Assembly (NCBI GenBank): GCA_002269645.1
Contig: NIVC01000349.1
Location: 1-64,000 of the forward strand
Direction: 5' to 3'
DNA from: Macrostomum lignano
Lineage: Eukaryota
Length of the DNA: 64,000 bases
Shown here: piece after piece, positions 18,801 through 21,800 of the stretch
Layout: every line of letters begins with the position of its first letter
How positions within the stretch are numbered: the stretch's first letter is position 1
The notes under the pieces: generated by a model
What the model was told of the DNA's origin: nothing
The model's input: the letters and a program-made list of their open reading frames with translations, nothing else
Database searches by the model: none
Position numbers and translations under genes: made by a program

Positions 18801-21800
18801 GCCGTCACCCTCATAACGGTGCTGGTGCTCGCTGCCGTGATCGCCTTTGCCACGGTGCTTTTCTTCTACGTGAAGAGAATTGACAGGCCATCTGATGATG
18901 GTGAGTCTGGTGAAACTGGTGTAGAGACAGAGAGACAGACAGACAGACAGACAGACAGACAGACAGACAGACAGACAGACAGACAGAGAGACAGACAGAC
19001 GGACAGACAGACAGACAGACAGACAGACAGACAGACACACAGACAGACAGACACACAGACAGACAGACAGACAGACAGACAGACAGACAGACAGGCAGAC
19101 AGACAGGCAGACAGACAGACAGACAGACAGACAGACAGACAGACAGACAGACAGACAGACAGACAGAGACAGACAGACAGACAGACAGACAGACAGACAG
19201 ACAGACAGACAGACAGACAGACAGACAGGCAGACAGACAGACAGACAGACAGACAGACAGACAGACAGACAGACAGACAGACAGACAGACAGACAGACAG
19301 ACAGACAGACAGACAGACAGACAGACAGACAGACAGACAGACAGACAGACAGACAAACAAACACACAGACAGACAGACAGACAGACAGACAGACAGACAG
19401 ACAGACAGACAGACAGACAGACAGACAGACAGACAGACAGACAGACAGACAGACAGACAGACAAACAAACACACAGACAGACAGACAGACAGACAGACAC
19501 ACAGACAGACAGACACACAGACAGACAGACAGACAGACAGACAGACAGACAGACAGACAGACAGACAGACAGACAGACAGACAGACAGACAGACAGACAG
19601 ACAGACAGACAGACAGACAGACAGACAGACAGACAGACAGACAGACAGACAGACAGACAGACAGACAGACAGACAGACAGACAGGCAGATAGACAAACAA
19701 ACACACAGACAGACAGACAGACAGACAGACAGACAGACAGACAGACAGAAAGACAGACAGAAAGACAGACAGACAGACAGACAGACAGACAGACAGACAG
19801 ACAGACAGACGGACAGACAGACAGACAGACAGACAGACAGACAGACAGACAGACAGACAGACACACAGACAGACAGACACACAGACAGACAGACAGACAG
19901 ACAGACAGACAGACAGACAGACAGACAGACAGACACACAGACAGACAGACAGACAGACGGACAGACAGACAGACAGACAGACAGACAGACAGACAGACAG
20001 ACAGACAGACAGACAGACAGACAGACACACAGACAGACAGACAGACAGACACACAGACAGACAGACAGACAGACAGACAGACAGACAGACAGACAGACAG
20101 ACAGACAGACAGACAGACAGACAGACAGACAGACAGACAGAAAGACAGACAGACAGACAGACAGACAGACAGACAGACAGACAGACAGACGTTTTAGAAG
20201 AAACGAGAAGGCAATATATTTGCTTTTCCCTTGACCCGCGATATATTTTGGAAATAATGTCAAATAATAATTAATATTTTGATTTATTGTTTATCCATAG
20301 TTTATTAACCAACAGCCACAGTCCGCAGCCTCAGGGGCAGAAGGCCGACATCGCCTGCCGCACCTCATCGGCGCTCAGCTGCCTGCGGGCGACTCCGAAG
20401 CACCTCACGCAGAGCCGCTGGGAAGAAGAAGAAGATGCATAAATACGAGCGTATTTCCCAGCTGCAGCTGCTGCAGTCCCAGTTCCTGAGCCCCAGAAGT
20501 ATAGTTCCCATAGTAAACGCTCCGCGGCTCTCCGATGGCAGGAGAATCCAAAATGCGGTTCTTCATCGCCAGCCGAATGTCGCACCAGCTGCCAGCACAG
20601 CCCGATCCGTTGAAGTCGTGGTCGTTGCGATGCCAAAGGAAATGTGTTGAGTTTCCAAGGTCGCGTTGCCCAACATAAAATCTGAATATGTCCCCAGGAT
20701 TTTGATAAATGCCAGCAATAAGGCTTTCCCTCCAATCCGGGCGCAAATGGTCGCTCGGGACCGACAGAAACCGAACAAAGCTGCCGCTGCTCCGAGTCAG
20801 CCTGAAGTACATGGTCCACTCTGCTGCATTCCAGATCGACTCATTGAATGCCACGGGAGCTCCGACATTGTAGAACTCCCTGTATCTGGCACTGGAATTC
20901 TGCTTGAAGCAGGCCCCGTCCTCTGCCGACCTCTCCACGCCGAACTGGTCCTCGATGGCGAAGGTGCGCGGGTCCACCAGGTTGTCGAGGCCCCTCCTGA
21001 AGTCGAACGCAGCCACGAGGCCGTCCACTGGTGGAGTGACGCCTCCGTCAGGTGCAGAGGTGACGCCTCCGTCAGGTGCAGAGGTGACGCCTCCGTCAGG
21101 TGCAGAGGTGACGCCTCCGTCAGGTGAAGAGGTGACGCCTCCGTCAGGTGCAGAGGTGACGCCTCCGTCAGGTGCAGAGGTGACACCTCCGTCAGGTGCA
21201 GAGGTGACGCCTCCGTCAGGTGCAGAGGTGACGCCTCCGTCAGGTGCAGAGGTGACGCCTCCGTCAGGTGCAGAGGTGACGCCTCCGTCAGGTGTGGAGG
21301 TGACGCCTCCGTCAGGTGTGGAGGTACCGTCCGACGCCTCCGTCTTGCACACGAACCTGTGCCTGCTGTGGCACCTGTCACTGCGCAGTCGACCAGCTGA
21401 CAGCGTGACGCAGTTCACAGTCCAGTCCGCACTGTTCGGGTGTCCAGTCTCCCATGCGGGCAGCTTGTTGTCGTGTTTCCCTCAGAAATCCGTCCACTGG
21501 TAGCAGAGCTCGCGACCCGCACTGTCAGGGAAGCAGGGGTTCAGCTTGATGAGGCCGAGCCACACCGAGTCGAGCAGCTCTGCCGACTCGCAGCTGTCGA
21601 TTCCGAAGCTGAGCTTGTTCACAAAGTCCAGCTCAGACTGGGTGAGCACCGACGCCAGCTGCGACGAGTTTCGCTGGCAGTAGAAGTTGGCCTCGTTGAA
21701 GTTGGCCTCAAACTGCGGCATCATGTAGCACTGCTTGTCGTGCAGCCACCAGCCGCTGGGACATCGGCCCTTCGACCGCCACCACCAGTCGACGAGACTG

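Follow-up and report, generated by a model that had tools for sequence, protein, structure and literature searches.

In this work, we describe an in-frame TGA that interrupts the second C-type lectin-like domain (CTLD2) of two secreted lectin genes, c1 and c2, located in a 64,000-nt stretch of the Macrostomum lignano genome (assembly GCA_002269645.1, contig NIVC01000349.1, positions 1 to 64,000; hereafter, the window). Our results indicate that this codon is very probably a young serine-to-stop mutation copied between the two lectin copies by gene conversion, and not a programmed recoding site. The TGA lies in a tract that is identical in c1 and c2 and whose flanks have an older history, and two relatives, at loci L001 and L004, are intact and carry the serine codon TCA. 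A first-pass annotation, made from the sequence alone, had put forward recoding (readthrough, selenocysteine or editing) as its headline, with, as a fallback, a nonsense mutation of recent origin that duplication or gene conversion had carried from one paralogue to the other; the evidence presented here, namely serine in the relatives and the shared tract, favours the latter.

Two lectin copies with a premature TGA

The two copies lie 34 kb apart in the same orientation and share one order of domains: signal peptide, CTLD1, CTLD2 with the premature TGA, a PDGGVTSA linker, and a family-specific C-terminal domain of ~227 aa. Loci of relatives were taken from the same assembly, and the codon was read from DNA in six of them (L001-L006) and at the protein level only in P0004. 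The features of both copies are as follows.

20331..22264, minus strand: lectin copy 1 (c1), ATG at 22264, delimited by translation, Pfam Lectin_C and alignment to the intact L004
21818..22189, minus strand: CTLD1 of c1, from CPGHGW to PFVCK, intact
21344..21763, minus strand: CTLD2 of c1, from CPSGWW to RFVCK
21482..21484, minus strand: premature in-frame TGA of c1 (plus-strand complement TCA), context UUC UGA GGG
21036..21325, minus strand: linker tandem repeat of c1, 24-nt unit, 12.1 copies, encoding (S/T)PDGGVTSA, rich in Ser, Thr and Pro
20442..20455, minus strand: extra 14-nt segment of c1, absent from L004 and L003b (a shortened gene adjoining the L003 lectin), causing a frameshift
20331-21028, minus strand: C-terminal domain of c1, ~227 aa
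54692..56473, minus strand: lectin copy 2 (c2), ATG at 56473, architecture as in c1, with a 6-unit linker
55547..55966, minus strand: CTLD2 of c2, Pfam Lectin_C
55685..55687, minus strand: premature in-frame TGA of c2; the positional homeologue L001 has TCA
55383..55528, minus strand: linker tandem repeat of c2, 24-nt unit, 6.1 copies
54695-55375, minus strand: C-terminal domain of c2, ~227 aa

Both copies read CYQWTDF-TGA-GKHDNKL in one frame within CTLD2, in agreement with the first-pass annotation. The Pfam family Lectin_C (PF00059) matches the conceptual protein in two stretches (E=1e-19, 71.6 bits versus a cut-off of 22.6), the best of which covers residues 189-310 with the stop included, and CTLDs of known structure in the PDB align across the TGA site. 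An alignment to the CTLD of DEC-205 places the TGA at the WSDG[S/T] position, ahead of the EPN-type loop (HPN here) and of the last three canonical cysteines, as had been proposed; the distal third of the c1 CTLD2, including the HPN loop and these three cysteines, is lost by the stop. The long open frame described after the TGA was also recovered, with 358 codons in c1 and 330 in c2, and in c2 the premature TGA is the sole disabling lesion, the frame being otherwise open to the natural TGA terminator. The mucin-like linker is a 24-nt minisatellite whose number of units varies among family members (12 in c1, 6 in c2, ~7 in L001 and ~14 in L004), and a short Pro-rich stretch takes its place in L003.

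TGA acts as a normal stop in this genome, as the annotation had held: the dynein gene of the window ends in AAG-TGA, and the terminators of the lectin genes themselves are also TGA. A reassignment of TGA was rejected, as dynein and five of six family members end in this codon and no tRNA genes are present in the window. We likewise rejected a mini-intron around the TGA, the only GT...AG candidate being 17 nt long and frame-shifting, in sequence that is coding in all relatives.

A second lesion affects c1. The extra 14-nt segment shifts the frame, and the conserved C-terminus LCVRCFG...AFCP with its stop (20331-20414) is thereby out of frame with the rest of the post-stop open reading frame (ORF). 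The motif LCVRCFG and the terminal Cys, which had been described as kept after the stop, are present, but in c1 they belong to another frame. A 29-nt intron (GTATTT...CCCAG) that would mend this frameshift was considered and rejected, as L003b and L004 carry homologous coding sequence at this segment and no relative has the intron. Doubly disabled, c1 would be the likelier donor of the stop.

A C-terminal truncation at the same hotspot was observed in the L002 member of the family. Its protein, P0003 (BOX15_Mlig011059g2, L002 ~10001-11294), has an internal Met within CTLD2 as annotated start, and ends at an in-frame TAG derived from a duplicated GGGGATTAGGGGATT just ahead of the conserved LCMRCFG...AFCP.

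Serine in the relatives and a tract shared by the two copies

Protein searches matched Macrostomum lignano proteins only, and the family comprises P0001, P0002, P0003, P0004, P0005, P0006 and P0007, with P0001 displaying 92% identity to c2. All family proteins covering the site read YQWTDF-S-G. The codon is TCA in the close paralogues or homeologues L001, L002, L003 and L004; of two distant paralogues, L006 (37% identical) also has TCA and L005 (47% identical) has TCC. Since the codon differs between TCA and TCC among relatives, it is the amino acid Ser that is conserved. Thus, serine occupies the site in seven of the seven relatives recovered (six by DNA, P0004 by protein), and TGA, one C>G transversion away from TCA, is limited to the two homogenised copies of the window. 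The alignment of family members at this codon, which the first-pass annotation had suggested as a check, gave the codon pattern that the annotation itself had named as refuting recoding, and leaves its recoding headline unsupported.

Over ~21 kb (42.7 to 64 kb of the window), the region that includes c2 aligns collinearly with L001 (NIVC01000349.1), with 95-97% identity, and the lectin gene of L001 is an intact ORF of 604 aa with TCA at the codon. The genome of M. lignano is neopolyploid and comprises three subgenomes (PMC10733133; PMC5704211), the paralogues of which differ by ~2.2% in single-nucleotide polymorphisms together with many indels (PMC10733133). Given that the collinearity at 95-97% is within this reported range, we infer that c2 and the L001 gene are homeologues. 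For c1, the closest relative is L004, which is 91% identical over 3.5 kb including the 3' flank, and displays an intact full-length ORF with TCA.

Comparison of the two copies revealed the following shared segments.

21186..21723 = 55389..55926: identical tract, 538 bp, 100%, holding the TGA; putative gene-conversion tract
21431-21433 and 55634-55636, minus strand: GAC>AAC codon, linked to the TGA within the putative conversion tract
21180..22535 versus 55383..56747: wider high-identity patch, 98.1%, from self-comparison of the window

Besides the TGA, two substitutions seen in c1 and c2 only fall within the identical tract, namely GAC>AAC at position 837 of the coding-sequence alignment, which turns the HPD of the family into HPN, and a synonymous AGC>AGT at position 893. 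An additional private change common to both copies is located outside the tract, at position 194, and in the 5' half of the module each copy keeps differences of its own (positions 21, 33-38, 534, 537 and 549). The change from HPD to HPN falls on the position of the EPN/QPD sugar-specificity motif of CTLDs.

The wider patch spans ~270 bp of upstream sequence and 5' untranslated region, the signal peptide and both CTLDs; upstream of about -270, the flanks of c1 and c2 are unrelated. Over the N-terminal 920 nt, synonymous divergence (dS) between c1 and c2 is 0.000 (0/201 synonymous sites), versus 0.020 in every other family pair, and in the C-terminal domain the same two copies are saturated (dS ~1.19, non-synonymous divergence dN 0.50). 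From an identical tract set between unrelated or saturated flanks, we infer gene conversion or an equivalent non-allelic exchange. The pattern of identity would make the two TGA codons one mutational event counted twice. The TGA had been called conserved, and it is indeed present in both copies, but the two codons are not independent, as both lie in the 538-bp identical tract.

We propose that a single C>G transversion converted a conserved Ser codon, TCA, into TGA in the second CTLD of a secreted two-CTLD lectin. The mutation would have arisen once, either in one copy or in the common ancestor of the 5' modules, and ectopic gene conversion, as part of an ongoing homogenisation of a promoter-plus-CTLD module, would have spread it to both copies. 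Translation most likely ends at the TGA, with a product consisting of CTLD1 and roughly two thirds of CTLD2; with neither the sugar-binding loop nor three of the disulphide cysteines, this product is unlikely to fold, and both copies would then represent young null alleles or pseudogenes with a presumed loss of function. Such loss may be tolerated in a neopolyploid genome with three subgenomes and at least four intact close relatives. The open frame past the stop would be an inheritance from the intact ancestor, not a frame maintained by recoding.

Nonsense mutations transferred from paralogue to paralogue by ectopic gene conversion are known from human CYP21A1P to CYP21A2 (Q318X) and from SBDSP to SBDS (K62X). 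As in those cases, here a premature stop sits in a short tract identical between nearby paralogues with flanks of different history, and one partner (c1) carries additional disabling lesions; unlike them, donor and recipient are not assignable, and in a multi-copy family of a neopolyploid no phenotype is expected. The findings also resemble early pseudogenisation after whole-genome duplication, with c2 probably null, its counterpart L001 intact, and a flank divergence that fits the subgenomes (PMC10733133; PMC5704211). Unlike that process, the putative null is shared with a non-homeologous paralogue in cis, so that an extra copying step is needed.

Taken as such, the TGA would be an ordinary young nonsense allele, and these genes do not belong on lists of readthrough or selenoprotein candidates. 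It would nonetheless provide a clean, datable case in which a tract of 538 bp or more moved a null mutation from one non-allelic paralogue to another in a neopolyploid genome, that of M. lignano. For annotation, the lesson is that "conserved" stops in recently homogenised paralogues constitute one observation and not two, and that an open frame behind a young stop is uninformative.

Recoding, selection after the stop, and other explanations

A search with Rfam at the gathering score gave 0 matches over the whole window. With the threshold relaxed to E<=10, no selenocysteine insertion sequence (SECIS) and no credible match were found on either strand of 19300-21500 and 53400-55700, regions that comprise the post-stop coding sequence plus ~1.1-1.3 kb downstream of each copy; the annotation, which had seen no clear SECIS, is upheld by both scans. 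Folding of the 131 nt that begin at the stop was less stable than that of shuffled controls (z=+1.57), and no local double-stranded structure at the TGA was found within these 131 nt, distant complements not having been searched exhaustively. The stop context is UUC-UGA-GGG-AAA and not the classic leaky UGA-CUAG, as previously remarked, and it equals that of genuine terminators of the family, which read UCC-UGA-GAC in c2 and CCC-UGA-GGC in the conserved frame of c1, with the same UGA-G. Apart from two linked substitutions, no co-evolved flanking changes were found between TGA and TCA copies.

Conservation beyond the stop had been taken as a sign of selection on the post-stop sequence. We confirmed that the motifs WTMYFRL, C-x-CDI and LCVRCFG are kept across strongly diverged C-terminal domains, but this conservation arose while the codon was still TCA, as illustrated by the intact L001, L003 and L004. 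Of the possible single-base changes in the downstream frames, 3.0-3.5% make a stop; with ~8 substitutions on the c2 lineage downstream of the TGA since its split from L001, ~0.3 new stops are expected, and a frame that stays open is therefore what would be expected in the absence of selection. The ratio of non-synonymous to synonymous rates (dN/dS) in the post-stop region, a check that the annotation had proposed, turned out to be uninformative. Between c2 and L001, the C-terminal domain gives dN/dS=0.23 on just 6 synonymous and 5 non-synonymous differences, and the lineage counts (synonymous/non-synonymous) of 4/2 for c2 versus 2/2 for L001 are too small to discriminate; those of 4/14 for c1 versus 5/12 for L004 are both near neutral. 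The centre of the C-terminal domain is fast-evolving in intact copies too. The argument for post-stop selection thus fails, because the conservation predates the TGA and too few substitutions have occurred since.

Programmed readthrough, by which each copy would yield a short and a long secreted lectin, draws on UGA being the leakiest stop codon, on the c2 frame open for 330 codons to a natural terminator, and on the dN/dS of 0.23 between c2 and L001 in the C-terminal domain. In metazoan genes that undergo readthrough, such as the UGA-CUAG genes MDH1, AQP4 and OPRL1, or Drosophila kelch and headcase, an in-frame UGA is likewise followed by a long open frame encoding recognisable domains, but both the stop and the peptide behind it are conserved in orthologues, and a context or structure that stimulates readthrough accompanies them, neither of which holds here. 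A Ser codon is found in all six relatives with DNA, the UGA-GGG matches the true terminators of the family, no stable 3' structure was found, and the flanking sequence is essentially that of the TCA copies, with nothing co-evolved with the stop; moreover, readthrough would replace a conserved Ser with Trp, Cys or Arg, the long product of c1 would be frameshifted, and the open frame is expected by chance. Programmed readthrough is therefore very unlikely; some basal leakage at the UGA may occur, with nothing pointing to programming. We consider it about as improbable that the TGA copies are not dead, with low readthrough or a CTLD1-only product being tolerated or exploited, and conversion of the stop tuning the dosage of fast-evolving secreted lectins. 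That the truncated product (signal peptide, CTLD1 and partial CTLD2) is a functional new short lectin favoured by selection is hardly plausible: CTLD1 is intact behind a signal peptide and the allele occurs in two copies, but misfolding is predicted for a CTLD2 without three disulphide cysteines and the distal strands (DEC-205 alignment and textbook CTLD structure), the two copies are explained by a single conversion tract, and no other family member has this architecture.

Editing of the UGA to UGG by A-to-I deamination, which would restore a full-length protein, is a formal possibility to which we give only the slightest credence, as no double-stranded structure around the site was found within the 131 nt, Trp would replace a Ser that is conserved through a synonymous codon change, and the stop is very recent and derived, leaving no time for a dedicated editing site. 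Selenocysteine is less credible still, to the point of being negligible: the in-frame UGA, with an open frame downstream, is shared with eukaryotic selenoprotein genes, but no SECIS was found in the Rfam scans described above, none of the seven homologues carries Cys or selenocysteine in place of Ser, and the site is a non-catalytic surface loop of an extracellular lectin fold and not a redox centre. Extracellular C-type lectins are not known as a selenoprotein class. An artefact of assembly or polishing, in which the C>G change is real in one copy or in none and was written into both since short reads cannot be placed uniquely in a near-identical 1.4-kb module, is unlikely, although at least six loci share a 5' module at 96-98% identity, the frameshift of c1 falls within low-complexity sequence, and errors in paralogous regions are a known weakness of M. 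lignano assemblies (PMC10733133). Against it, three more variants exclusive to c1 and c2 (194, 837 and 893) form a coherent haplotype, the copy-private differences (21, 33-38, 534, 537 and 549) speak against wholesale consensus mixing, and a substitution is not a typical long-read error.

Several points weigh against a young nonsense mutation spread by gene conversion. Both the frameshift of c1 and the G in both copies could be long-read assembly or polishing errors in a polyploid genome. Further, c2 has no second disabling lesion, and its dN/dS of 0.23, on tiny counts, is statistically compatible with some residual function of a c2 readthrough product. In addition, both the mechanism of copying (gene conversion versus unequal exchange) and its putative direction are read from the pattern of identity.

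Family architecture and surroundings of the lectin genes

Six or more loci on five contigs share a near-identical constant module of ~1.2-1.4 kb, comprising ~270 bp of upstream sequence, the signal peptide and both CTLDs; the pairwise dS values of this module, 0.00-0.02, form a star-like pattern. In the C-terminal domain that follows it, dS is 0.04-1.7, with a dN/dS (omega) of ~0.8-1 in the closest informative pair, and in the c1/L004 pair the non-synonymous versus synonymous counts are near neutral or higher. These observations suggest that a constant module, attached to a hypervariable C-terminal domain, undergoes concerted evolution across the family; this constant/variable lectin architecture is more promising than the stop codon and may merit separate study.

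The C-terminal domain has no Pfam match, and of 1.84 billion representatives searched exhaustively with HMMER, four matched, three of them M. lignano family members and one marginal (E=4e-4). Its AlphaFold model is beta-rich, with a mean pLDDT of 52, too poor for a fold search. The domain looks like a lineage-restricted orphan with conserved cysteines C40, C141, C146, C202, C205 and C226. Next to the lectin of L003, the gene L003b (L003 ~19439-20510, minus strand of the locus) is an intact ORF of ~260 aa in which both CTLDs are deleted, with just one linker unit between the signal peptide plus CPGHG motif and the C-terminal domain; this suggests that the domain can stand alone as a secreted protein.

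Other features of the window include the following.

1-6709, plus strand: 3' exons of an axonemal or cytoplasmic dynein heavy chain, with introns (Pfam AAA_9 and Dynein_heavy D6), ending in LLCDTK-TGA at 6707-6709
15804 to ~18200, plus strand: cadherin/protocadherin-like gene, five Cadherin-domain matches, E=4e-66
18200 to ~20260: (CAGA/CTGT)n microsatellite of ~2 kb, abutting the 3' end of c1
43258-44298, plus strand: exon of a transporter of the major facilitator superfamily (MFS) type, weak Pfam MFS_1, collinear with an MFS gene annotated in L001
51855-52832, minus strand: multi-pass membrane-like ORF of 325 aa, no Pfam match

The cadherin-like "ORF" of 1476 aa extends into the microsatellite and is partly a repeat artefact. 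In exact-protein look-ups against the contig index, neither the truncated ORFs of c1 (ATG start) and c2 (ATG and TTG starts), nor the post-stop ORF of c2, nor the 325-aa ORF had a record. Micro- and minisatellites are very abundant in the window (22850-23160, 23690-25590, 36850-41360, 44450-45290 and 60000-62100), including (GATA)n and (GA)n-like repeats, a 4.5-kb minisatellite block and arrays with a period of ~25-28 nt, with many long spurious ORFs on both strands. Finally, positions 31005-32906 (plus strand) match L002 11354-13574, the sequence directly 3' of the L002 lectin gene; in the window, this segment lies ~9 kb from c1 in the opposite relative orientation, and such a displaced 3' flank indicates a probable rearrangement (inversion or insertion) between related lectin loci.

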